IMG/VR virus record: IMGVR_UViG_3300032307_000369
Location: 124,001 to 188,000 of that record
Direction: 5' to 3' (one strand)
DNA length: 64,000 nucleotides
The translations under genes and the position numbers were made by a program. The notes beneath the pieces are model-generated. The model ran no database searches, had not been told where the DNA came from, and worked only from the letters and a program-made list of their open reading frames with translations. Below, one piece after another: positions 163-33,700 of this stretch. Position 1 is the stretch's first letter. Each line of letters starts with the position of its first letter.

Positions 163-522
163 ATGATTAAAAACATCACTCCTTCTGGTAGATATATACA
201 GGTAACTGGTGGCAACGCCAGTACCTATATAAATGGTTATCCTGGAGCACAAGGTGTTGGCAATATGCGTTTTAATACTTCTAATCAAAACATGGAAGTA
301 TTTGATGGCAGTAATTGGATTATGCTCAACATGGATTATGTTAGTGTAGGTTTAAATGGAGAAGCAGAATCATTGTTAGACTGGGCACGTAAAAAGCGTG
401 ATGAAGAGATGGAAATACAAGCTCTTGCCCAAACTAATCCTGCTGTTAAAAATGCATTAGAAGCTGTTGAACGAGCAAAAGAACAATTAAAAATAATAAA
501 GGAATTATCAATTGAGCACTAA
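163..522 (+). CDS. hypothetical protein
   Basis: 119-aa ORF preceded by CTAAATA; contains GNMRFNTSNQNMEVFDGSNW. Confidence 0.75.
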   Translation: MIKNITPSGRYIQVTGGNASTYINGYPGAQGVGNMRFNTSNQNMEVFDGSNWIMLNMDYVSVGLNGEAESLLDWARKKRDEEMEIQALAQTNPAVKNALEAVERAKEQLKIIKELSIEH

Positions 523-2041
523 TCGTATCAATTATACAGAAACACAAAGAGACTATGCTGTGTACTTGCCAGCTATTAGTAGCTTCTATACTAAAATGGT
601 TAGTGACACACGTCATAATCACAAAAGTGGTGTAGAGCCAGCAAGGATGCCTAAAGGGTTTGAGCATGGTATTGAATCTATGAACTTTTTAGATGCTGAA
701 CGTGGAGCATTTACATACAAATATGGATTGTATTCAGCAGGTCATGCGCAACTTGATTTAGATAAAACTATGCTTCGAGATGCTATGGTGCAAGAGCGTG
801 ACCGAGACAACACAATTATTTTAGGTGACTCAGGCGGTTTCCAAATTGGTAAAGGTGTATTAAAGTTTGATTGGCAAGATTTTAAAGGCAAAGGTGCTAA
901 TAAAACTCGTGATCAAATTTTAAATTGGTTAGAGCTTACTGCTAACTGGAGTATGGTACTCGACGTGCCCACATGGGCAAGTAATGATTTACATCGTGAA
1001 AAAACTGGTTTGAATAATTTTCAAGATTGCTTAGATGCAACTATTTGGAATAATAATTATTTCGCACAGAATCGTCTAGGTAATACAAAATTTTTAAACG
1101 TGTTACAAGGTAACAGTTTAGAAGAAGCTGACATTTGGTATGATGCTGTTAAACATTTGCCATTTGAAGGTTGGGCAATGGGCTCACAGAACATGTGTAA
1201 TATGCCAATTATTTTGCATAGACTAATAACAATGCGTGATGAAGGCATGCTAGAAGGCAAAGATTGGATACACTTCTTAGGTACTGCTCCATTAGACTGG
1301 GCTTGCTACTTAACAAGTATACAACGTCAATTGCGTAAGCATTGCAATCCTAACATCACTGTTAGTTTTGACTGTGCAAGTCCTTACATTGCAGTAGCAT
1401 ATGGTCTTTCATATACAGACCCAAGTTTCCGTAGAGATAAATGGTCAATTTTGATGGAAAAAGCTCCAGATAATAAAATTTGGGCAGGTGATACCATACC
1501 ATTCCCATGGCGCAGTGCTATTGGCAATCGTTTGACTATGGGAGATGTTTGTTATTATAAACCTGGCGACTTAAACAAAGTTGGCAAAGAAGGTAAAACT
1601 AGTTGGGATAGTTTTAGTTATGGCTTGTACATGGCACATAATACTGAAGTACACATCCAAGCTGTGCAACGTGCTAATCAACTGATGGATATGGAAGTGG
1701 CACGTTATAAACCAGATTGGAGATACTGGCGTAAACTTAACGAACGAGAAGAAAAAAGTGATAGCCCAAGTGAATGGGTTCCTCGAAATATTCTATACTT
1801 TGATCGTTTTGTTCAAGAATTATTTGAAAGCGACGATCCACGCACAATGTTAAAACATGCACACAATTTCTTAACCGAATTGCAAGGCGGATTACAGCGT
1901 GGCAAAACTGGCAACGATGTTAAAAATCGTGTTATTAATGCAGTGTTTGATTTTGGTGAAGACACAATCCCATCAAATGAAGAATTAACTGACATGAACG
2001 ATGAAAAAATTGTTGCTCTTGAATCTACTTTGGATGATTGA
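512..2041 (+). CDS. dpdA: TGT-family guanine transglycosylase, DpdA-like (inserts 7-deazaguanine into DNA)
   Basis: DSGGFQ catalytic motif, MVLDVP, NVLQG, IHFLG and SFDCAS motifs of the TGT barrel. Clustered with folE, queE and a queD-like gene. TTG start. Confidence 0.8.
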   Translation: MSTNRINYTETQRDYAVYLPAISSFYTKMVSDTRHNHKSGVEPARMPKGFEHGIESMNFLDAERGAFTYKYGLYSAGHAQLDLDKTMLRDAMVQERDRDNTIILGDSGGFQIGKGVLKFDWQDFKGKGANKTRDQILNWLELTANWSMVLDVPTWASNDLHREKTGLNNFQDCLDATIWNNNYFAQNRLGNTKFLNVLQGNSLEEADIWYDAVKHLPFEGWAMGSQNMCNMPIILHRLITMRDEGMLEGKDWIHFLGTAPLDWACYLTSIQRQLRKHCNPNITVSFDCASPYIAVAYGLSYTDPSFRRDKWSILMEKAPDNKIWAGDTIPFPWRSAIGNRLTMGDVCYYKPGDLNKVGKEGKTSWDSFSYGLYMAHNTEVHIQAVQRANQLMDMEVARYKPDWRYWRKLNEREEKSDSPSEWVPRNILYFDRFVQELFESDDPRTMLKHAHNFLTELQGGLQRGKTGNDVKNRVINAVFDFGEDTIPSNEELTDMNDEKIVALESTLDD

Positions 2042-2056
2042 TTTATCCAATTTCCA

Positions 2057-2085
2057 TTGACTTTATCAAAGGTATAGTTTATACT
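2057..2085 (+). promoter_or_regulatory. sigma70-type promoter
   Basis: TTGACT-N17-TATACT; ATG at 2092. Confidence 0.7.
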
Positions 2086-2091
2086 AGTTTT

Positions 2092-2604
2092 ATGCTTAAC
2101 ACACAAGAACGTCAAGAAGTAACATATTTTACTGGGTACGAAGTTGAACATACCATTTGTCATGGTATGAAAACTTTGTTTGTGGTAGGAACTCCGCCAC
2201 TTGAAGATATCCTGTACAAAGCAATTCAAACTGATTGCAAACATATCTATTTTGGTACTAGTCAGAGTTTTAATCCAAAAGCTATCAGTCATGAAGAATA
2301 CAAAGCATGGGATGATGTTATTGTGGGCTGTTTGAAAGCAGACTACTGGGTTACATTAGACTTTGGTGTTGAACACATTGAAGGTGTATTGGAATCCTGT
2401 TACAGTGAATATCCTCGCTTTGTTCCTATGATTAGTGTTAAGTTACCTTACATTAATCAACTCAACTACAATGCCACACTTAAATTGGATGATAGAACTT
2501 GGGGTGCTACTAATCCAGGTGTGTGGACACATCAACTACATGACCTAATGAGTAAAGACAAGTATACTTATTGGGATCAATACACTCAAGATACACCAAC
2601 ATGA
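2092..2604 (+). CDS. hypothetical protein of the deazaguanine cluster
   Basis: Open frame. Start moved to ATG 2092, downstream of the promoter. Stop overlaps the next start (ATGA). Confidence 0.7.
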   Translation: MLNTQERQEVTYFTGYEVEHTICHGMKTLFVVGTPPLEDILYKAIQTDCKHIYFGTSQSFNPKAISHEEYKAWDDVIVGCLKADYWVTLDFGVEHIEGVLESCYSEYPRFVPMISVKLPYINQLNYNATLKLDDRTWGATNPGVWTHQLHDLMSKDKYTYWDQYTQDTPT

Positions 2605-2990
2605 AAATTAAACATGACATCCGTCCTAATAAAATGATTTGGGTTACTTTTCGCAAAGAAGGTATTCACAAATATCCTGCCGCACTTACAGATCCATCAC
2701 TTGCAACAGGTGATGAATATGATGTAAGTTTCCTAGGCTATCCGCATCGTCACATCTTCCACTTTAAAGTATGGATTGGTGTTACACACGATGATCGCGA
2801 TATTGAATTTATCCAGTTTAAACGCTGGTTGGAAAAACTGTATGCAGAAGGTACACTCCAACTAGACTACAAGAGTTGCGAAATGATGTCAGGTGATTTA
2901 TATGACGTCATTAGCAAGAAGTATCCTAATCGTGAGATTTGGATTGAGGTCTCCGAAGATGGAGAAAATGGTTCTTTTATCAAGTATTAA
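2601..2990 (+). CDS. QueD/PTPS-like T-fold protein (DpdL-like)
   Basis: LGYPHRHIFHF (LxxxHRHxF) metal-binding motif, SCEMM and IEVSEDGENG; next to dpdA. Confidence 0.75.
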   Translation: MKIKHDIRPNKMIWVTFRKEGIHKYPAALTDPSLATGDEYDVSFLGYPHRHIFHFKVWIGVTHDDRDIEFIQFKRWLEKLYAEGTLQLDYKSCEMMSGDLYDVISKKYPNREIWIEVSEDGENGSFIKY

Positions 2991-3010
2991 CATTTTAAGG
3001 AAATTATAAA

Positions 3011-3250
3011 ATGGCGCAACCTGCATGGCTTAACAAATATCTAACTATGAAGCCTGAAGTAACTAAGATCTTTGATGATCTTGAAGCCTGGCACGATCAT
3101 TGCCGATTGGAGCTAATCAATTTTAACCCAGCAGACATGTATAAGTCTGATGTTTATCGCGACTGGAATCGTCGTAAAAATAGCAAACCACGTCATTTTA
3201 AAAATGACTTTAATCGTAACAACAATTATAAAAAGCCATATCGTCAATGA
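3011..3250 (+). CDS. hypothetical protein with basic C-terminus
   Basis: 79-aa ORF with AAGGA SD. Confidence 0.7.
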   Translation: MAQPAWLNKYLTMKPEVTKIFDDLEAWHDHCRLELINFNPADMYKSDVYRDWNRRKNSKPRHFKNDFNRNNNYKKPYRQ

Positions 3251-4332
3251 TATACATTGTTGATTTAGAAGCAGTTGAAACAAGGTACACGGGGCAATGG
3301 AAGCACCATGTACCTGAACTCTTACGAAAGGCAGGACACAATGTTCAAATTATATCTGGCCCTACGGATATCCCTTCTGCAACCACTCCTGGCGCTTTTC
3401 TTAATTTTGGTGGTACCAATATATACAAAGCTAGTCAAGTGGAGCAATTGGGCCGTTTATTTTGTAGCGGAGCCATTCATCCCGGTGATCACTTTATTTT
3501 TACTGATGCTTGGCATCCGGGCATTATAAACTTAAAGTACATGAGTGAGTTACTGGGTATTCCAGTAACAACACATGGCTTGTGGCATGCAGGTAGTTAT
3601 GATCCGCAAGACTTCTTAGGTCGTCTTGTCGGTGACAAGCCTTGGGTCAGACATGCTGAGAAAAGTTTTTTCCATTCGTTTGATCACAATTACTTTGCTA
3701 CAGACTTTCACATTGACTTGTTTATTAAAAATCTGTTTGAGATTAAACGTGAAGTATTTGTCAAACATCAAATTGATGAATATGTAGCAAGTGGAAAGAT
3801 AGTACGCTCAGGATGGCCCATGGAATATATGGACGGAACATTAACAATGTATAAGAATATGCCCAAGCGTGATCTTATCCTGTTCCCTCATCGAATTGCT
3901 CCAGAGAAGCAGGTTGAAATCTTTAGAGATCTAAAAGAACACTTGCCACAATATGAATTTGTAGTATGCCAAGATCAGCAATTAACAAAAAATGAATATC
4001 ATAATTTGTTAGGCGAAGCAAAGATGGTATTCAGTGCTAACCTACAAGAAACACTGGGTATTAGTTGTTACGAAGGCGCAGTAGTAGACGCTATTCCCAT
4101 GGTGCCTGATAGACTAAGCTATAGTGAAATGTACTATGACATTTTCAAATATCCAAGTATATGGACTGAAAGTTTTGAATCTTATCAAGCACATCGTCCA
4201 AATTTGTGTTTTGCAATTATGCAACACATGGATCATTATGAAACTAGATTGCCAAAACTAAAAAGTCAAACTATTGATTTAACTAACAACTTCTTCAGTG
4301 CAGGTAAATTAATTGAGCAACTCAAACAATAG
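3247..4332 (+). CDS. GT-B fold glycosyltransferase (GT4-like)
   Basis: FPHRIAPEKQ and SANLQETLGISCYEG (ExxGxxxxE) motifs. Confidence 0.8.
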   Translation: MIYIVDLEAVETRYTGQWKHHVPELLRKAGHNVQIISGPTDIPSATTPGAFLNFGGTNIYKASQVEQLGRLFCSGAIHPGDHFIFTDAWHPGIINLKYMSELLGIPVTTHGLWHAGSYDPQDFLGRLVGDKPWVRHAEKSFFHSFDHNYFATDFHIDLFIKNLFEIKREVFVKHQIDEYVASGKIVRSGWPMEYMDGTLTMYKNMPKRDLILFPHRIAPEKQVEIFRDLKEHLPQYEFVVCQDQQLTKNEYHNLLGEAKMVFSANLQETLGISCYEGAVVDAIPMVPDRLSYSEMYYDIFKYPSIWTESFESYQAHRPNLCFAIMQHMDHYETRLPKLKSQTIDLTNNFFSAGKLIEQLKQ

Positions 4333-4891
4333 AACGATTGTAGAAGAAAATGACGTATTTAAAAAATATAATTTTTCTTCTATAATATCTCCGCAAGATG
4401 AATCACTTGCAAAACAAGACATCAAAAATATAATTGAAAGTGGAAACTATTTTAAAAATAGTCCAAAGTTTCAAACCTCTGAAAATGTGTTTGCTAGAAC
4501 TGAACAACATTGGCTTAAACTTCGAATGAGTTTTATTTTTAGTTGTTTTATGTATTTGGGCAAAGAAGTTCAAATTAAAAATATGCAAGCATGGAGTTTC
4601 ATGACCAATAATGACATTGTTGAAGATCGTGATGATCTTTGGCACACCCATCATTTGACCAAAGAAAATAATTCTTTATCTGCAATTTATTATTTGCATA
4701 TACCAAATGATGCTGTATATATGCTAAGTGGTACTGAGTTTGCTCCTAACGGAGTTAAAGAGCAGGAACGTTTGGTAGTAACCCCCGCTAGTCAAAGTTG
4801 GCTAGTTTATCCCAGTGACCAATGGCACAGACCGATGCCACCTCAATCAAAAGAGTATCGGTTTATTGTTGCCGCAGATATGGAGTATTAA
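4313..4891 (+). CDS. putative 2OG-Fe(II) oxygenase
   Basis: WHTH...SAIYYLHIP...GTEF...YPSDQWH...RFIVAAD pattern of a DSBH oxygenase. Confidence 0.6.
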   Translation: MSNSNNRTIVEENDVFKKYNFSSIISPQDESLAKQDIKNIIESGNYFKNSPKFQTSENVFARTEQHWLKLRMSFIFSCFMYLGKEVQIKNMQAWSFMTNNDIVEDRDDLWHTHHLTKENNSLSAIYYLHIPNDAVYMLSGTEFAPNGVKEQERLVVTPASQSWLVYPSDQWHRPMPPQSKEYRFIVAADMEY

Positions 4892-4892
4892 T

Positions 4893-5207
4893 ATGAAATG
4901 GTTTGATAAATGGATTATGAAAAAAGCAGAGAACATTATGCGAAAGGACAGGGAAGTTGATAGTGGGCTTGTACCATATAACCTAGCTTCTACTAAACAA
5001 ATTAGACCTATAGAAGTTTCTGATTCATTGGACACTAGGGCTGTAAAATTCAAAATGTACAAAGCCAGTGGCGGTACCATTATTGAAACAGCTATGTACG
5101 ATGATAGAAAAGACAGACACAATATTAGTTTATATGTTATTACCAATGACAAGGATTTAGGCAGTGAAATTGGTAAAATCATAACTATGGAAAGTTTAAA
5201 AGTTTGA
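4893..5207 (+). CDS. hypothetical protein
   Basis: ATG 4893 directly follows the upstream stop, with GGAG SD. Confidence 0.7.
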   Translation: MKWFDKWIMKKAENIMRKDREVDSGLVPYNLASTKQIRPIEVSDSLDTRAVKFKMYKASGGTIIETAMYDDRKDRHNISLYVITNDKDLGSEIGKIITMESLKV

Positions 5208-5233
5208 CATATGATCCTAAATAATGTTATAAT
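5204..5233 (+). promoter_or_regulatory. sigma70 promoter with embedded late-type TAAATA box (folE)
   Basis: TTGACA-N18-TATAAT with extended TG; CCTAAATAAT lies in the spacer. Confidence 0.7.
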
Positions 5234-5259
5234 TAACTTGTTTAGTATAGGAATCAATA

Positions 5260-6009
5260 ATGACATCAAAAAATAATGAAACAGGCTTAGACGCAATGGC
5301 AGGCGATGGCGGATATAAAGAAGCATATCTAGCAGATGTAATTCGCTTTAAAATGAAACGTGATCAAAAACGTTTTTGGGCAGGTGACAATGTATCAGAT
5401 TATGTCACTGAAGAAATGAAACACAAGCTCATTGACGAAGCAACTGAAGCATTTGAACTAGTACTAGATCGATTGCTTATTGATCGAGAAAATGATCCTA
5501 ACTCGCATGGTACAGCCCGCCGACTGGCTAAAATGTACTTTAATGAAATAATGGCAGGAAGATATGAACCAGCACCAGATTGTACAGCATTTCCAAATGA
5601 CTCGGCGGACCGTTATGAGGGTATGTTGGTTGTTCGTAGTGAGCTTCGCAGTATGTGTAGCCATCATCACCAACCCGTTGCTGGCGTTGCTTATATTGGC
5701 ATTATTGCTGCCGAGAAACTCATTGGACTCAGCAAATACACACGCATCGCACAGTGGTGTGCAAGACGAGGTACTCTCCAGGAGGAACTTTGTAATGACA
5801 TTGCTAGGGAGATCCAAAAAGCAACAAACTCCCAAAACGTAGCAGTCTACATTCAAGCCACACATGGTTGCTGTGAGAATCGCGGCATTATGGCTCACAG
5901 TTCATTAACACAAACAACTGTACTAACTGGTACGTTTAAAACTGATCCAGGAGCGAAAAAAGAATTTTTTGATAACATTAAATTACAACAAGAGTTTGCT
6001 CCTAGATGA
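5260..6009 (+). CDS. folE: GTP cyclohydrolase I
   Basis: SMCSHH, IGLSKYTR, LQEE and HGCCENRG motifs. Confidence 0.95.
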   Translation: MTSKNNETGLDAMAGDGGYKEAYLADVIRFKMKRDQKRFWAGDNVSDYVTEEMKHKLIDEATEAFELVLDRLLIDRENDPNSHGTARRLAKMYFNEIMAGRYEPAPDCTAFPNDSADRYEGMLVVRSELRSMCSHHHQPVAGVAYIGIIAAEKLIGLSKYTRIAQWCARRGTLQEELCNDIAREIQKATNSQNVAVYIQATHGCCENRGIMAHSSLTQTTVLTGTFKTDPGAKKEFFDNIKLQQEFAPR

Positions 6010-6182
6010 ATTTAGACTTTGAAACACAAAACAAATACTATTTAGAATACAACATCAAAGCAGTAGAGTTAGGTGTAATGTGTAATCAGTATCCTGCGCT
6101 TCAAAAAGCGTGGGATCAATTTAAAACCGTTTACGAACTTTGTAAGGAAGAAAGCGATGAAGATTACCAGTCATTTCCTTAA
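6006..6182 (+). CDS. small hypothetical protein (58 aa, absent from ORF track)
   Basis: ATGA overlap with folE stop. Reads MNLDFETQNKYYLEYNIKAVELGVMCNQYPALQKAWDQFKTVYELCKEESDEDYQSFP. Confidence 0.65.
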   Translation: MNLDFETQNKYYLEYNIKAVELGVMCNQYPALQKAWDQFKTVYELCKEESDEDYQSFP

Positions 6183-6642
6183 TTGGTTAGATAAGAGAGG
6201 AAGAAAGCGTATTGTTATGGATCGTCAAAGTGATGACCCGTATTTAGAACGCTATTATTTGTTTTTAAAAGACAGAGATAATTTTCCTTTTAACGTATTC
6301 TTACACAAGTTTTTAAAAGGTGATCCTGACGATGTTCATGATCATCCATGGCCTTATGCTACACTGATACTCAAAGGTGGATACTACGAATGGATTCCAC
6401 AATTTAACTCAGATGGTACTAAAAGTTGTGAAGTACGCAAATGGCGTGGTCCTGGGCATTTCCGCATTTGTAGTCCAAACAGTTATCATCGCATCGAGCT
6501 AAAAGAAGGTGTAACAGCATGGACACTGTTTATGCCTGGACCTAAAAAACGTGATTGGGGATTTTTAGTTAATAACAAATGGATCCAACACGAACAATAC
6601 CTTAAGGAAAGATATGAGCAAGCGCATAATAACATACACTGA
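6157..6642 (+). CDS. cupin-fold protein
   Basis: HDHPW...LILKGGYYE...HRIEL...WTLF cupin motifs. Confidence 0.75.
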   Translation: MKITSHFLNWLDKRGRKRIVMDRQSDDPYLERYYLFLKDRDNFPFNVFLHKFLKGDPDDVHDHPWPYATLILKGGYYEWIPQFNSDGTKSCEVRKWRGPGHFRICSPNSYHRIELKEGVTAWTLFMPGPKKRDWGFLVNNKWIQHEQYLKERYEQAHNNIH

Positions 6643-7168
6643 ATTTAAAAATTTAGTTAGTAGTCTGTGCAGACAAATAACTCTTAGCGAGTGGAAACCA
6701 GACTACATTGTTGGCATTAGTAGAGGTGGCCTACTACCAGCAGTTATGATCAGTCATTATCTAAATGTTCCAATGCGACCATTGCAAGTAAGTTTACGAG
6801 ATGGTGGCGAATGCGTTAGCGATTTAGGTATGGCTGAAGATGCTTATGGGTATGTTAATATAGAAGACAGAGAATTCAATGATGGCGAATCTAGTAACGT
6901 ATTGTCTAGAAAAAACATACTAATAGTAGACGACATTAATGACCAGGGTAACACAGTCAATTGGATTTTAAATGATTGGCCTAGTGGTTGTATGCCTAAC
7001 GACAAGTCCTGGGAAACTGTTTGGAACAACAATGTAAAATTTGCAGTCTTATTTGATAACTTGGCAAGTAAAGCATCTATTAAAATGGACTTTGCAGGAG
7101 AAGAAATTAATAAATCTGTAAACGATGTATGGATTGAATTTCCTTACGAAGAATGGTGGACAAAATGA
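6614..7168 (+). CDS. purine phosphoribosyltransferase (Gpt/XGPRT-like)
   Basis: IVGISRGGLLPA, PRPP-binding ILIVDDINDQGNT, and WIEFPYE C-terminus. Confidence 0.85.
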   Translation: MSKRIITYTEFKNLVSSLCRQITLSEWKPDYIVGISRGGLLPAVMISHYLNVPMRPLQVSLRDGGECVSDLGMAEDAYGYVNIEDREFNDGESSNVLSRKNILIVDDINDQGNTVNWILNDWPSGCMPNDKSWETVWNNNVKFAVLFDNLASKASIKMDFAGEEINKSVNDVWIEFPYEEWWTK

Positions 7169-7563
7169 CCGACTTATATAAAGTAGTTCTAACTGAACCA
7201 GCATTTATAGAAGATTCAAAAAATGCACCGTGGGATAATTTGATTGAGGAAGACTTTCACGTTAAAGTATTTGCAGACAAATATCCAGTTACAGAAGGAC
7301 ACTTGTTGTTTATACCAAAGTATAATACTACACATGTTTTAGCAGACGCTATGAACGATGCTGTTCAACTAGGAATAAAAAAAGTACAGGCAGGTGAATG
7401 GGATGGATTTAATGTAGGGCTCAATATAGGGTTGGCTGCAGGACAAACTGTAGATTGGCCACACGTACATTTAATCCCAAGACGTAAGGGTGACATGGAA
7501 GATCCAACAGGCGGAGTACGTCACGTCATTCCAGAAAAAGGTAATTATAGGAAAACAAAATGA
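7165..7563 (+). CDS. HIT family nucleotide hydrolase
   Basis: DKYPVTEGHLLFIPK and AGQTVDWPHVHLIPR. Confidence 0.9.
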   Translation: MTDLYKVVLTEPAFIEDSKNAPWDNLIEEDFHVKVFADKYPVTEGHLLFIPKYNTTHVLADAMNDAVQLGIKKVQAGEWDGFNVGLNIGLAAGQTVDWPHVHLIPRRKGDMEDPTGGVRHVIPEKGNYRKTK

Positions 7564-8667: not shown

Positions 8668-8855
8668 AAATATCATTATTTGCCTTTATTGCTATTATTG
8701 CGATGTTTGCATCAATATATTACAGTATTCCAAAAAAAGGCGATGTAATCAAAATTGATTGTAGACTATCAGAAATAAGTCCAGATATTCCAATTTGGGC
8801 AAAACAAGAATGTCGTAAAAAACAGTTAGAATTGTTTGACAAACAACCTAAATAA
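8637..8855 (+). CDS. small membrane protein
   Basis: One hydrophobic segment (ISLFAFIAIIAMFASIYY) and a Cys pair. Confidence 0.6.
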   Translation: MSDITKREIVKISLFAFIAIIAMFASIYYSIPKKGDVIKIDCRLSEISPDIPIWAKQECRKKQLELFDKQPK

Positions 8856-8864
8856 TAGTATAAT
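8836..8864 (+). promoter_or_regulatory. consensus sigma70 promoter with embedded late-type TAAATA box (queE)
   Basis: TTGACA-N17-TATAAT; CCTAAATAAT lies in the spacer. Confidence 0.8.
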
Positions 8865-8886
8865 GAAGTATAAATTGGAATCACAT

Positions 8887-9792
8887 ATGGAAAAAATTAG
8901 ATACAGTGAAATGTTTTATAGCGTACAAGGCGAAGGTCGCTTTGTAGGAGTGCCCAGTGTTTTCTTTAGAACGTTTGGTTGCAACTTTGAATGTCGCGGT
9001 TTTGGACAAGAAAGAGGTAACTTTATACCTATTGAACAAATGCCACACAACAATGATCCTAGAGCCAATCCTGATCATCCAGAAGCATATAAGAGTTTTG
9101 AAGAACTGCCAGTTAGTAATATTGGGTGCGATACTAGTGCCAGCTGGAGTGCAAAATATAAACACTTGGCTACTTGGGATACCGTAGATGTTATTGCTGA
9201 CAAGCTAACTGCAATGACTCCAGAAGGAAAATGGACATGTGATAACGGTCAGGATGTACATCTTGTTATTACTGGCGGTGAGCCTTTAATGTGGCAAAAG
9301 CAATTGGCGGCTTTATTAAAACAACCGCAATTTAAAGACATTAAAAATGTAACATTTGAAACAAATACAACACATGAACTAAAACAAGAATTTATCCAAA
9401 TGATGCTGGATCTTGGTTTTGGTCCTACTCGAGATCCAAATTACTTTGTTAAGTTTACTTGGAGTTGCAGTCCTAAATTGACTAGTTCTGGAGAGGCATG
9501 GGACGAAGCAATTAAGCCAGAAGTAGCGGCTCAATACTATGGATTACCTGGTAGGAACTTTTATTTTAAATTTGTTGTAACTGATGAACAAGATGTTTTA
9601 GAAGTTGAAAAGGCCATTGAACTGTATAAAGAAAAAGAAATTTTTTGTGATGTTTATTTGATGCCTTGTGGTGCTACGCAAGAAGGACAAGCTAAAACTG
9701 CACGTCAAGTTGCAGAACTATGTTTACAAAAAGGTTTTAGATTTAGTCCAAGATTGCACGTAGACTTGTTTGGTAATGCATGGGGGACTTAA
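8887..9792 (+). CDS. queE: 7-carboxy-7-deazaguanine synthase (radical SAM)
   Basis: FYSVQGEG, RTFGCNFEC...GCDT, VITGGEP, ETN, SPK and RFSPRLH motifs. Confidence 0.9.
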   Translation: MEKIRYSEMFYSVQGEGRFVGVPSVFFRTFGCNFECRGFGQERGNFIPIEQMPHNNDPRANPDHPEAYKSFEELPVSNIGCDTSASWSAKYKHLATWDTVDVIADKLTAMTPEGKWTCDNGQDVHLVITGGEPLMWQKQLAALLKQPQFKDIKNVTFETNTTHELKQEFIQMMLDLGFGPTRDPNYFVKFTWSCSPKLTSSGEAWDEAIKPEVAAQYYGLPGRNFYFKFVVTDEQDVLEVEKAIELYKEKEIFCDVYLMPCGATQEGQAKTARQVAELCLQKGFRFSPRLHVDLFGNAWGT

Positions 9793-12706: not shown

Positions 12707-13792
12707 ATGGCAAAGAGCGAAATTAGTGCAAATCGTACAGTCACCCCTAACGAGGCTAAAAAGTCACTACGCAAGTGTGTGTCTAAAAAGCGTCCAATTT
12801 TTATGTGGGGAGCGCCTGGTATTGGCAAATCCGACATTGTTCGACAAATTGCAGCCGAAGATGGTCGTGAGGTGATTGACGTTCGACTTCCTCTTTGGGA
12901 GCCTACTGATATCAAAGGTATCCCTTATTACAATGCTACAGAAAACACAATGAGCTGGGCTCCTCCCGCAGAGTTGCCTAGTGATAAAAATAGCACTGCT
13001 ATTTTGTTTTTGGACGAGCTTAATGCGGCTCCGCCAAGCGTACAGGCTGCGGCTTATCAGTTGATTTTGAATCGCCGTGTAGGTACTTATGTACTTCCAG
13101 AAGGTGTTAGCATTGTTGCCGCAGGTAACCGTGAAACTGATAAAGGTGTTACATATCGTATGCCAGCCCCGTTGGCAAATCGTTTTGTTCACTTGGAATT
13201 GCGTGTAGACTTTGATGACTGGAATCAGTGGGCTACTTCAAATAAAGTACACAAAGACGTTGCTGGTTATCTAAACTATGCAAAACAAGACTTGTATGAC
13301 TTTGATCCTAAATCCGCAAGTCGTGCATTTGCTACACCACGTAGCTGGTCTTTTGTTAGTGAGCTTCTTGAAGACGAAGACACTGATGACGGTACTATTA
13401 CTGACTTGGTTGCAGGTGCTGTTGGTGAAGGTCTTGCTGTTAAGTTTATGGCACACCGTAAAATTTCTGGTCAGTTGCCTAATCCATCAGAAATCCTTGA
13501 TGGTAAAGTAAAAGAGTTGAAAATTAAAGAAATTTCAGCAATGTATTCTTTGACCATTGGCATGTGCTATGAGCTTGACGAGCGTCATAACAAGAAAGCT
13601 AAAGATTGGGATGGCATGGCAGACAATTTCTTCCGTTTTATGATGGACAATTTCCCAACAGAAATTGTTGTTATGGGCGCAAAGACTGCTCTTACCAACT
13701 TCCAACTGCCTTTTGATCCTGCTGAAATGAAGAACTTTGATGAGTTCCATGATCGATTTGGCAAGTACGTTATTACTGCCCTTGAAAAATAA
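12707..13792 (+). CDS. MoxR-like AAA+ ATPase
   Basis: Walker A GAPGIGKS, Walker B LFLDE, AAGN, arginine finger LANRF, and TPRSW. Confidence 0.9.
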   Translation: MAKSEISANRTVTPNEAKKSLRKCVSKKRPIFMWGAPGIGKSDIVRQIAAEDGREVIDVRLPLWEPTDIKGIPYYNATENTMSWAPPAELPSDKNSTAILFLDELNAAPPSVQAAAYQLILNRRVGTYVLPEGVSIVAAGNRETDKGVTYRMPAPLANRFVHLELRVDFDDWNQWATSNKVHKDVAGYLNYAKQDLYDFDPKSASRAFATPRSWSFVSELLEDEDTDDGTITDLVAGAVGEGLAVKFMAHRKISGQLPNPSEILDGKVKELKIKEISAMYSLTIGMCYELDERHNKKAKDWDGMADNFFRFMMDNFPTEIVVMGAKTALTNFQLPFDPAEMKNFDEFHDRFGKYVITALEK

Positions 13793-13806
13793 GTGCAAAA
13801 AATAAC

Positions 13807-13835
13807 AAAGAAGGGGCTTAAATGCCCTTTCTTTT
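13807..13835 (+). terminator. intrinsic terminator
   Basis: AAAGAAGGGGC-TTAAAT-GCCCTTTCTTTT. Confidence 0.7.
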
Positions 13836-13836
13836 A

Positions 13837-13865
13837 TAGACTTTTAACAAGATTCGTGCTATAAT
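13837..13865 (+). promoter_or_regulatory. sigma70 promoter
   Basis: TAGACT-N17-TATAAT with extended TG. Confidence 0.7.
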
Positions 13866-13894
13866 ATGCTATATAATTGAAAGAAAGGTTGTAT

Positions 13895-15169
13895 ATGTCC
13901 TCAACTATTATGAAAGACGAAAACAATAAAAAAGTTTTCGAAAAGCGAGAACACAGCACAAAAGAGAAAAATGATGCTGTAGAAAAACTTATTACCGCTA
14001 GAGTTGGACTTTTACTACGACAACCATTTTTTGGTAATTTAGCAACACGCCTGCAACTAATTGATGCTAGCGATTGGTGTCCTACTGCCGCAACTGATGG
14101 TCGTAATTTTTATTACAATATTGACTTTATTAAATCACTGAGTGCAAAACAATGTGAATTCCTTTTTGGTCACGAAACACTACATAATGTGTTTGACCAC
14201 CTAACACGTCGTTTAGATAGAGATCCAAAGTTTTTTAACTATGCTTGTGACTTTGCTGTTAATCAAATTTTGATTGACGAACGCATTGGTGAGAAAATTG
14301 ATCAAGTAAAAATTTGTTATGACTCAAAATATCGAGGTAAGAGCTCTGAAGAAATTTATGACGACTTGATGAAGAATGTCAAATTTATGAGTGCTGAAGA
14401 ACTCCTTAAGCAGTTGGGCGAGTTACTTGACGAACATATGGATTGGGACGAAGACGGTGATCCTAGAGATGGCGAAAGTAATGGCGATAAGGATGGAAAA
14501 GGTGCTCCTAAATATAGCAAAGAAGAACTGAAAAAAATTCGAGATGAATTAAAAGAAGCAATGGTTGCCGCCGCACAGGCAGCTGGCGCTGGTCGAGTCC
14601 CAGTGGGTGTCCAGAGACTCCTTAAAGACCTTACAGAGCCAAAAATGGATTGGCGTCAATTGTTGCGTATGAATATTCAAAGTATTCTTCGTAGCAATTA
14701 TAGCTTTATGCGTCCAAGTCGAAAAGGATGGCATACTGGGGCGGTTTTGCCAGGTATGCTTAATGATGAAACTATTGATATCTGTATTGGTATTGATATG
14801 TCTGGTTCAATTGGTGATGCACAAGCCAAAGACTTCTTAAGTGAAGTTAAAGGAATTATGGACGAATATGTAGACTATAATATCCAACTTTGGTGCTTTG
14901 ATACAGAAGTATATAACTATGCCAAATTTAGTGCCGATAACGGCCAAGATTTAGACTCTTATGAAATTAAGGGCGGTGGCGGTACTGACTTTGACTGCAA
15001 TTATAACTTCATGAAAGATCAAGGAATTGAACCTAAGAAATTTGTAATGTTTACTGACGGATATCCCTGCGGAAGCTGGGGAGATGAAGACTACTGTGAT
15101 ACATTGTTCATTATTCACGGTTCGGAAGATATAAAATCTCCATTCGGTCAGTACGCACATTATAAATAA
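13895..15169 (+). CDS. metallopeptidase-like plus VWA domain protein (DUF2201-like)
   Basis: TAATDG, HETLH (HExxH), MIDAS DMSGS, GGGGTDF and FTDG motifs. Confidence 0.85.
   Translation: MSSTIMKDENNKKVFEKREHSTKEKNDAVEKLITARVGLLLRQPFFGNLATRLQLIDASDWCPTAATDGRNFYYNIDFIKSLSAKQCEFLFGHETLHNVFDHLTRRLDRDPKFFNYACDFAVNQILIDERIGEKIDQVKICYDSKYRGKSSEEIYDDLMKNVKFMSAEELLKQLGELLDEHMDWDEDGDPRDGESNGDKDGKGAPKYSKEELKKIRDELKEAMVAAAQAAGAGRVPVGVQRLLKDLTEPKMDWRQLLRMNIQSILRSNYSFMRPSRKGWHTGAVLPGMLNDETIDICIGIDMSGSIGDAQAKDFLSEVKGIMDEYVDYNIQLWCFDTEVYNYAKFSADNGQDLDSYEIKGGGGTDFDCNYNFMKDQGIEPKKFVMFTDGYPCGSWGDEDYCDTLFIIHGSEDIKSPFGQYAHYK
15161..15168 (+). promoter_or_regulatory. T4-type late promoter
   Basis: Exact TATAAATA upstream of ATG 15185. 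Confidence 0.7.
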
Positions 15170-27719: not shown

Positions 27720-30700
27720 TTAAGACAGTTTGCCATAGTAATACTTATCGGGCAATTCTGAAGTGAACTCTTGTAAGAATCTAGCTTGTGGAGTTGACTC
27801 CTGCTGTATAGTAGTTGTTCCACCAAGGGTATACCAAATCTTACCAATTTTTTGTACTACTTTGATATCAACATTTGATATCACTGTAGAATCGCTGTTT
27901 AAAGACAATACACTAGGGTTAACTGTCAACACGTAGTTATTCCCAACTTTTTCAATAACAAAGTCTGGTGCCGCTGTTAAATCACCTGATTGCCCTTGAC
28001 TGTTAACTTCGTCTGAGTTATGGGTTATGCTAAAATCGTGTTTGATTAACTGGTTACTTCCCCTAACTGGTTTAGTTAGTACCTTGCCAGCCATGTACAC
28101 TGTAACTTGATCTTCAAGACCAATCGTATCATTGAATGTAAAATCAGTCAAGGTATAAGAAGCCACAGTGGTTACATTTACCCAGTTACCGTTTACATAC
28201 TGTTGATACCTGTTGGTAGTTTGATTAAATTTGTAATTTTCAGGAGTTTTATACGTTTTTATAGTATATCCTTCTCTGTACGGAATAGTTTCATTGTTTC
28301 CAACGTTAAACACTTTGGTACCAACAGGATAGCTATCAGCTACGCCAGTTCCAAGTGTTCCTCGAGTTAAGTTTGTTAGCTTATTGCCAACAATAGACCT
28401 AAATTCAATTCTTTCTCCAGCAATAAAAATTGAGCTTGGTTTTGGATTATTGACATTAACTACTCCAAATATACTTGTGTCACTAACTTCAATCTCTCTG
28501 TCAGTTGACATCAGTGCCTTTGTCAAAGTCACAGTGCTGTTCTTTGATAATCTCTTGAACTGCACAGCATTTGTCATATCTTTAAACATTCTATAAGAAA
28601 CTGCTTCGCTTGATACAATATCGCTAATACTTGTTACAACTACTCTGTCGTTGTTACCTAGATTAAATCTATTTGATATTTGAATATAATCTTTGTCAAC
28701 CACTTGATAATCATAGTTTGGAATTAATGGACGACCATTTACGTCAACCCAAACATTGTTGATATTATAAACAGGTCTGCTAAGTTTATACTCGTTTCTA
28801 TTAGGATTAGTTTTGAATACTTCTCTTCTAATTAGATTTTCATCATGATTTGTATAGGTGACCACTGATACTCGTTGACCTACTTGTATTTTAGCTGGAC
28901 TTCTAAATGTTATTTGATTGCCAAAAATTACGTAGTCTGAATCACGTAGTACACATACTGCAACTACATCGCCAACTTGTGCTACTCCTGAACTCATAGT
29001 AATTGTATTATTGACCGTGTTAAATTCATAGTCTCTGCCTACTACTATAATTTTTCCATTTTTGTACACTTCAATATCAGATATTGACAAAGTACGTGTT
29101 AAGTAAGGAATGTTTTCACCTAATCTAAATGTTTGAGAGTTTTGTGTAACTTCATAATATTCAGTTTCAGGTGGCATCATTCTTTGCGTTGGAGTAAGAC
29201 CCCAATAAATTCTAGAAGTATCTTCGTCAGGACGATTAGTAATATGCACTCCCCAATATATTATATTATCAGGTGTCAAAGTAGTTGTATTTGAAGTGTG
29301 TGCAACTTTACAAATATGATATTGTCCACTGAAAGAAACAATATCATTAACATCATAAGAAACTGTACTTGCCCAAGCAGGGAATACCAATTCAGAATTG
29401 GTCTGTGTGCTAGTGTGTCCAATTTTACAAATATATGAAACATTGTTGTATAGAACAGTGTCATTTATTGTGTAATAAACATTTTCTAGCCATGGGCCCT
29501 TCCAATCTTCTGTAGAAGATGTTAATCTAGTTACTGCTGCCATAACGTGCAACGGTGCAATATTTCCAGGCGGTTTAGTTAATGTATAAGTTGTATTATT
29601 ATCAATTACAATTTCTTGATTATAAATTTCACTATAAGTTTTAACTGTTGACCCAAATAGCAATATATTAATAACTGTGCCTGCTGTCAAAGTAGGAGTG
29701 TTAGTAATAATAATTTTAGCACGTTTAGATCTGCCTGCTGCCTTGGTTATAGAACTAGTATTTGAAATTGAAATATAGTAACTACCAATATCTTGATAAT
29801 TAATATCTGACAAAATTTCAAAAGAAGTTGCACTAGCATTGGCACTAGTCACAGTATAACTAAATCTACTTAAAATATTACTTCCACCAATTGTTGTCTT
29901 TTGTACAGTAAGTGCAAGTGTATTTGTAGCTGACAGCTGATCAATTCCATATTCATTTGTAATAATGGTAACAGTTGTTGTTCCATTTACATTTGATGTT
30001 AGTGTATAATCAGTATTTTCTTTAGCAACAAAATTACCAATCAATACAAATATTTCTTGTCCACTGCCAATTGTGTCTTGGATCACAAATTGCATTGTTG
30101 ATCCATCCATTATAAATTGTTTAGTAGAAATTAAATTACTTCCTGCACCTGGGCTGTTGAACACAGTCATTGATAGTGTGTCAAATATCTCACCCTTGAC
30201 TAGTTCTTCTGTTGAAGGACTATGTTCAACTGATAAAAATTCACCACCATCTAAACTTATGTCAGTGGCACTTAATCCAGTAGCAGTTCTAAATCTTATT
30301 TCGCCAGCGTCCAAAATTGTTGAAAAATCTCCGCCAGTAATATTTGTATCAAGAACAATATCATCAGTTGGTAAATTTACGCCATCACTTAATTCTTGAC
30401 GAATCTCAATCTTTATACCTGATGATGGAACCTGTGGAAGTGTCAATGTACTTGTAGAACCACTAGTTGTAATTGTTTTAAACAATGCATCACTATTTGT
30501 TTGATCCACTGTGCCATAATTTTCATCATCAACTCTAACACCATCAAAGTAAACGTTGATTTTTGTACCTAATAAAGGTGTATATCCTAAATCATATGTA
30601 GTAGTAGTTCCGTCTGAAATTACCAACAAGTCCTTGTAGCTGTTGACAAATGTGTCCCAGCCCTGTGTAAACCAAGGCAATCCATCCCAGCCTGAACTAA

Positions 30701-33700
30701 CTGTAAAATTAAGACCCTGTATCTCTACTCCGCCAAATTCTACACCTTTTATTAATTGAGTAACGTCCTTACCTGGCATGTTTGCAGTTGGGTAATAACT
30801 TGTAATAATTCTGTCAACCGCATTTTGAATATTAATATTCTTAGCATACTGAACTGTAATAGTTGATCCTGGATTTGGAATATTTTTAAATTTAATATAC
30901 CCAACATACTTTGTGAATCCATTTTCAATAATTTGTTTTAATTGAATCAAATAGTCACTAGTTATAATCTCTGATCCAGTATTGGTGCTTGCATTTAATT
31001 CACGCACAATAATTTTATCAGTATCTAAATCTGGTGGGAATGTTAGTTTAAATGTGTCAGTGTAACTTTCTCCAGAAGATTGTGTAAACGTATCAACGGT
31101 GTACAGTGTATTTTTAATATACTGTATTCTTAAATTTTGTCTTGCAGGTAAAGCAAGATTAAATGTAATCACTGTTGACAAATCGTTTCTAAAAGTTATT
31201 CTATAGTTGTCAGCACTAATCTCTGCATCGTTTAAAAACAACTTAATAGTTGATTCGTCTTGTAATGCAGGGTAATTTGTGTCTGTATTAGTAGATGGAT
31301 ATGTTAATACATAATTTAATGTTACTCCATCAGTATCAACGTTTCTATTAAGAATTTCTCCAGTATATAGACCTGTGTCAGAAGTTCTATCAAATTTCAT
31401 CTGTATTTGATTACTTCGAACTTTGCTATTTGATAATACCGCATACGCAGACCCATTTACAAAATCTGCTAGATAATTTGACCCTCCAGTTAAAATAACT
31501 TTAGGAGTCGTCAAATATCCTCTACCTGGATTTGTAACAATAATACTTGACAATTTACCATTACTAATTTTAGCAATAGCTGTTGCGCCAGTGCCTGGAT
31601 CTCCGCCAACTGGAACTATTGTTACTATTGGTGGGGTAATATAATTTTGACCTGTTAGACCAATTCTAATATCTGACACCGTGAAACCGTAGTTTTCACC
31701 CCAATGCTTATAAGGGTAAACATTATTAATCATCGACGTAGTTGGTAATTTAATCGCACCAGTAATACTGTCAACATACGCAGGCAAGTCAAAATCAGTT
31801 ACACCAACACCTATTTTTTCAATAGTATTATAACCAACTGTTGATTCTCTAAATTTAGATTTGTATGGTTTAATTTCTTTGATAAAATCTTCAACATAAC
31901 TAAAGTCATTGAATCGATAAACATCATCTTGGTCTAGTGTTCCAGCATCTACAAACGGTGTAATAAAACTAGTCTTATATACCCAGTCCACAAATAGTTG
32001 TTCACTTAGCACGTGTCTTATGGCAACAAATACAAACTTTTTCCAATAGGATGCTAAATCGCCTACAAAAATATTGTCTTTAATTGCATTTAAAATAATA
32101 CGTAGTTCAGTAGTATTTGTTTCATCAAACCCACCTTGGTCGTATCTAGTTACGTTGTCAAATCCAAGACCGGCAGCAATTTTATCATATAACTTATTAT
32201 TGAACTGTACTGTTCCGTTTTCTCTAAAAACTAGATCGTAATCATCAAGATAGTTGCCTGTACCAGCAGTTGTTTTACGCACAATAATTCTTCTACCGTC
32301 TCCTGGTGTTCTAATTTCAACTGTTGATCCTGTTTCAAAGATAAAGGATTCTAAATCAGAAATGAAATTAGTTGCGTATGTGGCTGGCACATCAACTGCG
32401 TATGAAGGATCGACCCAATCAACATAACTCCAATATTTAGGCACGTTAATTGTTTGCGTAGATTCTCTAACAAACGATTTATTTTTATACTGATAAATTG
32501 CCCACTTATCAATTTCTGTATCAAGTACAGTAAGCACTGAGTATGGTCTAGCAATTAGCTTTGGTGTTTCAGTATATCCATAACCTTGATTTACAATTCT
32601 AACTGATACAACACGGCCATTTAAATCAATAGCAGTTTGTATGTTGGCTCCTTGACCAGTACCATAAATTTGAACTGTTGGAGCAACTTTGTATCCATTA
32701 CCAGGATCATCAATGTTCACTCTAACAATTTTACCGTTAACTACAGTAGCACTTAATTTAGTTTGTACTTTTCCGTTAGTTCCTATTGAAGAGATTTCAT
32801 CACTTAATTCAATAACTTCATCATAATGACCTAAACTAATGGATGGATAATCTTCGACCTTTTCTAGTTCGGCTAAGTTAGCCTTACCAACAATATCGTG
32901 TTTAAGTAATATTTCATTAACATATTCGATCATTATTTTTAATGCCAAATCTCTGTCTTTGAACCACGACTGTCTTGGTCTGTAAGATGTTCCATAACGC
33001 AACTTTGGAGATACCTCAGGATCAGGTACAGGATTGCCAGCAACATCTTGTCCAACAAGACTGTCAATGAGCTTGTTCTCAATACTAGGATCTAGATTCA
33101 AATAGGTAACATTTTCATTGACTAACTGCCAATGACTATGACGATTAATTTCTTTGTCAGAGGTTTGATAGTATACATCAATATTAATTTTATTACCATT
33201 CAAAGACTTTTTGGCATTAGTCAAACTTAAAGAGTTCGTTGCTAAAAAGCTAGCAAATTTAATACCTTGACCTTTAGGATCTTCAATTATTCTTGCACAA
33301 TCAAAAGAAGTCATATTTCTAAATTCTAAGTCTGGAAGAGTAATTTTATTTCTAACCCAGAAATAATAAACGTTAACAAAATCATTGACTACTGGGTCAA
33401 AGTATTGATTAATTGATAGTACTGTATTGTCTGGGTTTAATGGTTGTCCGCTAACTCCCAGTGCTAGTCCGTCAGTTGTATCAGCTAGTTGCGCCCACTC
33501 ACTTGGTCTAAAATCACTCTTAACCCACTCATAAACATCAACTGTTGATCCTGGGAATAATTTACCCCAGTTGTTCGCTCTAAACTCATTGTCGCCTTGC
33601 TCATACCAAACAAATCTTAAGGTGCTTGTGTCTAGCCAAACTTCACCAACGTGATCATCTAACCAAGTTGTTTTGTTATCAACTCTTACTTTGGCTGATG

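Follow-up and report, generated by a model that had tools for sequence, protein, structure and literature searches.

A GT4-like glycosyltransferase is a conserved partner of long DpdA3 and DpdL in a deazaguanine DNA-modification module of jumbo phages, prophages and bacterial islands

The stretch of DNA analysed here (the window) comprises 64,000 nucleotides (nt), positions 124,001 to 188,000 of the IMG/VR record IMGVR_UViG_3300032307_000369, and is part of a T4-like myovirus genome with a gp20 portal, gp46/47-like genes, DHFR and ThyA. An open reading frame (ORF) at 3247-4332 of the window encodes a GT4-like glycosyltransferase (GT) that lies amid genes of deazaguanine DNA modification. We found this GT to be a core, co-inherited part of one such system, made up of a long form of the DNA guanine transglycosylase DpdA3, the QueD-like protein DpdL and the GT, and the DpdA3-DpdL-GT module is a new variant among the known deazaguanine DNA-modification systems. 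By analogy with other systems, the GT may glycosylate the deazaguanine that DpdA3 installs, so that the sugar would reside in the DNA, a proposal that we make tentatively and weigh below. The whole IMG/VR record is 245,550 bp long with an estimated completeness of 70%, relatives of the window phage were recovered from lakes and other freshwater and from the subsurface, and megablast of the first 8 kb of the window against a phage collection gave no match.

Related loci were taken in from IMG/VR (80) and from bacterial and archaeal genome assemblies (42), and at least 582 IMG/VR loci carry the module. Linkage was counted with iterated hidden Markov models built from the window proteins, restricted to loci where the GT is flanked by 4 kb or more on each side (n=75), which fell into close relatives of the window phage (n=37), other phages and metagenome contigs (n=10), and genome contigs (n=28). 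A long DpdA3 lay within 4 kb of the GT at 70 of the 75 loci (~93%) and DpdL at 61 of them; within the three groups, the long DpdA3 was present in 36/37, 7/10 and 27/28 loci, and DpdL in 35/37, 10/10 and 16/28, respectively. The linked loci span freshwater T4-like jumbo phages, PA5oct-like phages, phage ACP17, Xanthomonas phage BUDD, Methylobacterium prophages and Roseobacter islands, the hosts covered being Pseudomonas, Xanthomonas, Acidovorax, Sinorhizobium, Methylobacterium, Roseobacteraceae and freshwater hosts, and the GT neighbourhood was also seen in metagenomic contigs of unrelated phages.

A tblastn search of 50,697 phage records placed the GT in Sinorhizobium phage Phosso (51% identity), in 11 records of PA5oct-like Pseudomonas jumbo phages (40%), in Acidovorax phage ACP17 (36%), and in Xanthomonas phages BUDD and X1 and Burkholderia phage BCSR5 (22-27%), with a weak match in a 227-kb Xanthomonas/Erwinia phage group. 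In all of the named phages, from Phosso to BCSR5, the GT sits amid FolE/QueE genes and near DpdL. It abuts DpdA3 in the PA5oct-like phages, ACP17 and BUDD, the gene ends often overlapping or nearly touching, with DpdA3 preceding the GT in the PA5oct-like phages and ACP17 and following it in BUDD. DpdL adjoins the GT, the two genes meeting or overlapping, in Phosso, ACP17, the related locus L005 and a Methylobacterium prophage (in Phosso and L005 in the order DpdL, GT), and lies ~85 nt downstream of the GT in the PA5oct-like phages. In Phosso, where the GT abuts DpdL, DpdA3 is 170 kb away, and in BCSR5 the DpdA3 profile did not pick up the gene of 446 amino acids (aa) that follows the GT. The link between the GT and the deazaguanine genes is not accidental.

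The GT ORF opens with ATG, closes at a stop codon and encodes 361 aa. More than 8000 homologues were found among metagenomic proteins at E<=0.001 in a word-indexed search of 5.8 billion proteins, the best 120 of these being 77-91% identical to the window GT, and when representatives of clusters at 50% identity were searched exhaustively with HMMER, 1118 matched at E<=0.001, 239 of them at E<=1e-30. The median ratio of nonsynonymous to synonymous substitution (dN/dS) among 80 close relatives was ~0.10, an approximate value given that dS is near saturation, and the ORF is a real gene under purifying selection. Contigs from lake metatranscriptomes, 80-99% alike, cover DpdL, the GT and FolE of the window phage or its relatives (window 2500-6100); these are consistent with expression in nature, and DNA carry-over is possible.

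An AlphaFold2 (AF2) model of the GT (pLDDT 94.3, pTM 0.91) revealed two Rossmann-like domains with an inter-domain cleft, the GT-B fold. The EX7E motif is formed by E268 and E276, the diphosphate-binding R-x4-K pair by R216 and K221, and these together with H114 are kept in 131 of 136 GT homologues, the other five having conservative replacements. In the N-terminal (acceptor) domain E8, R13, Y14, W18, D87, W89, D119, D122, W133 and E138 are near-invariant. A profile of the family aligned the motif region to the GT4 enzyme 8xsg (E 6e-4); as a single sequence, the window GT matched nothing significantly in Pfam (E<=0.01), PHROG, NCBIfam or PDB sequences, and its PA5oct-like and ACP17 homologues scored 19.9 and 21.1 bits against Glycos_transf_1, below the cut-off of 26.4. 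On these comparisons we take the family to be a divergent GT4 branch missed by present Pfam, PHROG and NCBIfam models. Because its catalytic residues are intact, the protein is most likely an active, retaining-type GT4 glycosyltransferase that transfers a sugar.

The GT and the genes around it are the following, by window position.
512-2041, plus strand: long DpdA3-type DNA guanine transglycosylase, 509 aa (tRNA-guanine transglycosylase, or TGT, fold; GDSGGFQ)
2038-2604, plus strand: conserved ~170-aa protein between DpdA3 and DpdL, likely start Met codon at 2092 (known from homologues only)
2571-2990, plus strand: DpdL, a QueD-like T-fold protein (phrog_17812 at 1e-31; LGYPHRHIF)
3011-3250, plus strand: small ORF of 79 aa with a basic C-terminus, its stop overlapping the GT start
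3247-4332, plus strand: GT-B/GT4-like, retaining-type glycosyltransferase, 361 aa (fold, EX7E, R-x4-K)
4313-4891, plus strand: 2-oxoglutarate (2OG)-Fe(II)-oxygenase-like ORF (weak; PF13759 at 2.8e-4, phrog_81)
5260-6009, plus strand: FolE, GTP cyclohydrolase I (PF01227 at 2.3e-39; phrog_2197 at 7e-45)
6157-6642, plus strand: cupin-type protein with an HDHPW metal motif (phrog_4786 at 7e-39; weak PDB matches to Cupin_2)
6614-7168, plus strand: purine phosphoribosyltransferase (PRTase), HGPRT-like (PF00156 at 8e-12)
7153-7563, plus strand: HIT-family protein (PF01230 at 5e-10)
8836-9792, plus strand: QueE-like radical-SAM 7-carboxy-7-deazaguanine synthase (phrog_2076 at 4.5e-58)

The protein at 512-2041 was assigned as a DpdA because the top 50 Foldseek matches of its AF2 model (pLDDT 80.8) in the PDB were all tRNA-guanine transglycosylases (E ~2e-7). 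Its invariant motifs are GDSGGFQ (D106) and HFLG, the first of which holds the catalytic aspartate of DSGG(F/L)Q. It is 40% identical to the gene directly upstream of the GT in PA5oct-like phages, and matched the protein upstream of the ACP17 GT by hhalign at E 3e-4 (probability 38%) and the DpdA3 of Cellulophaga phage phiST at E 3e-3; its profile found nothing among PDB sequences, and BLAST against the DpdA3 proteins of phiST and BUDD was not significant. The LGYPHRHIF of the window DpdL, which is 32% identical to that of phiST, fits the DpdL signature LxxxHRHxF, defined in PMC10516641, which replaces the CxxxHGH of QueD.

Homologues of the ~170-aa protein were present in 37/37 close relatives with enough flanking sequence, always between DpdA3 and DpdL in the window lineage, and also in ACP17 (L003:6233-6718), upstream of DpdA3. 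It carries the motifs TLFVxG, HIYFGxxQSF and ATNPGVW, and gave no Pfam, PHROG or NCBIfam match, an Atlas match at noise level and no fold assignment; a relationship to CGPG_00066 of phiST was considered and rejected, the two being unrelated. The 79-aa ORF has counterparts at 77 related loci (34-96% identity), none of them outside the window lineage. The 2OG-oxygenase-like ORF overlaps the GT stop and, with one small ORF, separates the GT from folE; it was found in only 7 of ~80 close relatives and is accessory, outside the conserved module. Further downstream, the cupin-type protein was present in 35/37 close relatives and the HIT-family protein in 21/37, and the purine PRTase, whose best PDB sequence matches are purine PRTases and HGPRTs, also adjoins the module in PA5oct-like phages and at loci L007 and L016/L018.

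The NCBIfam QueE models matched the QueE-like protein below threshold. QueD is encoded elsewhere in the record (G000:C1:70849-71187), 53 kb upstream, and QueC was not found in the 245-kb record, which at ~70% completeness makes its absence less than absolute. The only thymidylate-synthase homologue of the record has the dUMP-type Asn (GVPFNIASY), and we found in it no second thymidylate-synthase-like gene and no route to 5-hydroxymethylcytosine (hmC) or 5-hydroxymethyluracil. The initial annotation had described a GT4-like enzyme in the middle of deazaguanine genes, in a window with a dUMP-specific ThyA and no hmC-forming enzyme. The GT-B fold and the two motifs bear out the first point, and DpdA with its TGT fold and the T-fold protein DpdL upstream, together with FolE downstream, the second; the third extends to the whole record, including the part outside the window.

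Bacterial loci help to separate the GT from the precursor pathway. In a Methylobacterium prophage the order is DpdA3, a 201-aa protein with weak Vut_1 similarity, DpdL and GT, with portal and capsid genes nearby and no FolE, QueD or QueE detected near the module. Integrase-flanked islands of Shimia and Sulfitobacter, beside SMC-like or conflict-system genes (MC2, CTD6, nSTAND3), have the order YhhQ-like Vut_1 transporter, GT, DpdA3 (519 aa) and a 585-aa protein whose Atlas look-alike clusters include viral members, and again no FolE, QueD or QueE was detected in the 10-kb flanks. Such islands (L150:9510-15477 in Shimia ponticola, L148 in Sulfitobacter, and also L126 and L136-L141) occur in Roseobacteraceae and Rhizobiaceae, and four of them carry a second GT4-like gene, which in Shimia and Sulfitobacter is on the opposite strand, as expected if a glycan is extended. 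YhhQ-family proteins are importers of queuosine precursors. Apart from a few unassigned genes, these islands have only a transporter, the GT and DpdA3; the partner of the GT is therefore the insertion step and not pterin chemistry. It is possible that the islands apply the same chemistry in a chromosomal system for marking DNA or for defence. Module contigs were also seen in metagenome-assembled genomes labelled Neomarinimicrobiota, Methanobacteriota, Pacearchaeota, Fischerella and others (L109, PBPT01000016.1, 335 kb; L111; L113; L108), and these are probably mis-binned jumbo-phage contigs.

DpdA3 and DpdL were defined by Cui, Hutinet et al. 2023 (PMC10516641), who found the DNA of Cellulophaga phage phiST to contain 100% 2'-deoxy-7-deazaguanine (dDG), all guanine being replaced. 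Co-expression of dpdA and dpdL of ACP17 without the GT yielded no dDG in the same study, and the authors suspected missing enzymes; heterologous expression of the phiST genes failed in the same way (PMC10516641). The window phage shares with phiST the genes for FolE, QueD and QueE, the lack of QueC, a DpdL with LxxxHRHxF and a TGT-fold DpdA with DSGG(F/L)Q. The two differ in that the DpdA3 of phiST has 259 aa and comes without a GT match, whereas the window has a DpdA3 of 509 aa together with the GT4 enzyme, the purine PRTase, the cupin and the ~170-aa protein. Among the GT-bearing phages, PA5oct has DNA that resists several restriction enzymes with G in their sites and serves as a target for nucleases that specifically recognise hypermodified DNA; its QueE and PTPS genes were noted in the 2025 preprint, in which the structure of the modification was not determined (PMC12191111). 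Neither the GT nor the phages that bear it are mentioned by Hutinet 2019.

Three kinds of glycosyltransferase offer likenesses to the window GT. The a-gt and b-gt of T4, glycosyltransferases encoded in a phage DNA-modification cluster, act on DNA, on hmC. The window GT shares with them the GT-B fold and a place within a phage DNA-modification gene set, and a-gt is likewise retaining with a similar isoelectric point (pI 6.1 versus 6.08), but the window phage has no hmC pathway and the partner of its GT is a base-exchanging transglycosylase. T4-type enzymes were absent from the top 50 PDB structural matches of the GT, and a 'DNA alpha-GT' of cyanophage S-TIM5 ranked 21 in BFVD with a TM-score of 0.53. 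HuiG of the huimycin pathway is a GT4-type enzyme that uses UDP-N-acetylglucosamine (UDP-GlcNAc) and a free 7-deazapurine, O6-methylated preQ0, as acceptor; the likeness lies in the GT4 type and in a 7-deazaguanine-derived heterocycle as acceptor, drawn by description and not by sequence, and HuiG differs in belonging to an actinomycete secondary-metabolite cluster without DpdA. Lastly, the animal tRNA-queuosine mannosyltransferase QTMAN/GTDC1 is of GT4 fold and attaches a sugar to a nucleic-acid base derived from 7-deazaguanine, and the Drosophila QTMAN protein is a structural neighbour of the GT at a TM-score of 0.57, no better than generic GT4 enzymes. Its acceptor is the cyclopentenediol of queuosine, a group that the window pathway, lacking QueC and the steps that follow, is unable to form.

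Based on these comparisons, the pathway we propose would begin with FolE, QueD and QueE, which would convert GTP to 7-carboxy-7-deazaguanine, continue with its decarboxylation to 7-deazaguanine by DpdL, and lead to the exchange of guanine in DNA for 7-deazaguanine by DpdA3. The purine PRTase would probably recycle the released guanine toward GTP, and could alternatively make a deazaguanine nucleotide. The GT would then transfer a sugar from a host nucleoside diphosphate (NDP)-sugar to the deazaguanine, either to the free base before insertion or to the base in DNA, giving the phage genome a glycosylated deazapurine that would add to its protection against host nucleases. Of this last step, we infer the deazaguanine acceptor, the sugar in DNA, the donor, the linkage atom and the timing. 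The acceptor must exist where only a transporter, DpdA3 and (mostly) DpdL are present, which points to a deazaguanine base or modified DNA and away from pterins, and, by analogy with T4 and given the second GT of the islands, the simplest account is that the glycosylated base is in DNA.

The initial annotation had taken the acceptor to be a deazaguanine side chain in DNA. Its tie to deazaguanine DNA genes agrees with the linkage described above, but the presence of DpdL and absence of QueC predict a 7-deazaguanine free of side chains, so that a side chain is an unlikely acceptor. It is here that our proposal meets its main difficulties. Without a hydroxyl or side chain, 7-deazaguanine offers only N2, C7 and C8, we know of no GT4 enzyme that C-glycosylates, and a sugar on N2 would lie in the minor groove. 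A 2OG oxygenase that creates a hydroxyl acceptor was considered and dropped, given the gene's presence in only 7 of ~80 relatives. Since phiST reaches complete dDG without a GT match, the GT is not needed for dDG as such, and the failed reconstitution with ACP17 genes is weak support because the phiST genes failed likewise. In the GT-bearing phages, the deazaguanine in DNA is itself predicted from their genes. No DNA-binding signature was found in the GT, which has a net charge of -9 and a pI of 6.1; T4 a-gt (pI 6.1) and the window DpdA3 (pI 5.6) are as acidic, and charge and pI therefore say nothing on DNA binding. Finally, across the freshwater lineage (80 relatives, L023-L102) the GT is uniform at 76-86% identity and DpdA3 is variable at 34-96%, so that the two probably do not form a co-evolving complex; a complex prediction for DpdA3 residues 1-460 with the GT scored 0.00, gave no answer and is neutral. 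The ~170-aa protein varies likewise (38-95%) and its combinations with DpdA3 look mosaic, which suggests exchange of transglycosylase cassettes within one phage lineage.

Because the base has no hydroxyl, we consider an unprecedented linkage; alternatively, DpdL may not simply decarboxylate in the GT-bearing systems. In its bolder form, which we regard as conceivable and rather less than probable, the GT would make a sugar-bearing 7-deazaguanine in DNA, perhaps through a C7 C-glycoside or an N2-glycoside; the core of long DpdA3, DpdL and GT would then mark this modification in freshwater jumbo phages, the PA5oct group and alphaproteobacterial prophages and islands, and in the islands, alongside the YhhQ-like importer, the 585-aa protein and the second GT, it might supply the modifying half of a novel system that marks DNA as self or non-self. 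Of the eight 7-deazaguanine derivatives described in DNA, none to our knowledge carries a sugar. In the literature searched, which left most subscription journals outside, no paper connected a glycosyltransferase with DpdA or described a deazaguanine in DNA that bears a sugar; the initial annotation likewise knew of no glycosylated deazaguanine in DNA.

The GT might instead act on a free 7-deazapurine or another small intermediate, the sugar serving as a temporary handle, marking a form for storage or export, or belonging to a separate small-molecule product, and never entering the DNA. We consider this rather unlikely, although it has a precedent in HuiG and agrees with several properties of the protein: the closest structural neighbours (BshA, MshA, SPS, GlgM and LmbT) all take small anionic or polar acceptors, the invariant Asp/Glu and Trp/Tyr residues of the N-terminal domain are as expected for gripping a 2-amino-4-oxopyrimidine face, the GT family is acidic overall, and in the islands the GT stands between the transporter and DpdA3. 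The near-constant company of a DNA transglycosylase would, however, be pointless for a free metabolite, and a huimycin-like product has no obvious use to a phage. The TGT pocket grips N1/N2 and requires a free N9, so a base glycosylated at N2 or N9 should not be a substrate for insertion. The co-occurrence of the GT with long DpdA3 at 93% of loci would also fit an accessory factor for the long enzyme, loosely like DpdB for bacterial DpdA, that uses or binds an NDP-sugar and puts no sugar on DNA. The inactivity of ACP17 dpdA and dpdL alone in Escherichia coli points the same way, as does the short DpdA3 of phiST, which has no GT match, beside the long forms (400-600 aa), which mostly have one. 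We hold such a role to be improbable, as the fully conserved EX7E and R-x4-K motifs point to real glycosyl transfer, the GT does not co-vary with the divergent DpdA3 versions, the DpdA3 of Phosso is 170 kb from the GT, and Vibrio phage 2.275.O has a long DpdA3 without a GT.

Acceptors unrelated to deazaguanine, such as host lipopolysaccharide (LPS), capsule or wall polymers, protein, or hydroxymethyl-pyrimidines in DNA, are the commonest for GT4 enzymes, and in the window a 2OG-oxygenase-like gene overlaps the GT stop. We nevertheless think them quite improbable: the synteny with dpd genes holds across very different hosts, ThyA is of the dUMP type with no second thymidylate-synthase-like gene beside it, and the 2OG gene is absent from most relatives, its weak matches being of the 2OG-FeII_Oxy_5 type with no Tet_JBP match reported. 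A pterin, the second acceptor that the initial annotation had allowed for, would make the GT an enzyme like the cyanobacterial tetrahydrobiopterin (BH4) glucosyltransferase that acts on the product of FolE and a PTPS-like protein. This has lost ground and now seems highly improbable, given that the bacterial islands keep the GT, DpdA3 and the YhhQ-like transporter with no pterin genes nearby; neither co-occurring pterin side-chain synthesis nor specific similarity to BGluT-type enzymes was found.

The most distant GT homologue, on a very long outgroup branch, is that of Xanthomonas phage PhiXhv-15 (L104:5669-8903), which lacks dpd genes; it forms a trio with GlmS and an LmbE-like deacetylase, which hints at a GlcNAc-then-deacetylate pathway in the 227-kb jumbo phages. 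DpdL without a GT match was found in phiST and its relatives, Rhizobium phage RHph_I1_18, Ahp1, two Vibrio phages, one Synechococcus phage and one Chryseobacterium phage, and searches returned no GT homologue for any phage in which mass spectrometry has been used to measure deazaguanine in DNA. The long DpdA3 of Vibrio phage 2.275.O is 27% identical to that of the window and accompanied by QueC/QueF; the 370-aa gene that follows it was examined as a GT homologue and rejected, as it is not homologous. In RHph_I1_18 a macro-domain (Appr-1-p processing) gene follows DpdL in the place of the GT (L010:8971-10232), and the 18-kb stretch yielded no long DpdA3; the same pathway may here have been elaborated in another way.

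A sugar-bearing deazaguanine, if confirmed, would be without precedent among genomes as a glycosylated purine analogue and would define a new class of hypermodification, possibly with new glycosidic chemistry. It would explain why the reconstitution with ACP17 DpdA and DpdL failed, and would identify the guanine modification of PA5oct, a therapy-candidate phage, with relevance to its use against Pseudomonas with modification-dependent nucleases. Long DpdA3 together with the GT would then be a genomic marker for the annotation of such genomes. Should no sugar be found, the GT would still be an obligatory new partner of the long DpdA3 enzymes. The module is common and is carried by culturable phages (the PA5oct group, ACP17, Phosso, BUDD and BCSR5), which makes these predictions directly testable.

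Two other regions of the window may be recorded. On the plus strand, a gene for an AAA+ (MoxR-like AAA_5/AAA_3) ATPase is followed by one for a DUF2201 metallopeptidase-like/VWA protein (12707-15169). On the minus strand, positions 27720-41963 in the tail/baseplate region form a single ORF of 4747 aa with CBM_5_12 modules and FG-GAP repeats, followed by an ORF of 1136 aa and with a tail-collar protein nearby; the large ORF probably encodes a giant fibre or adhesin.

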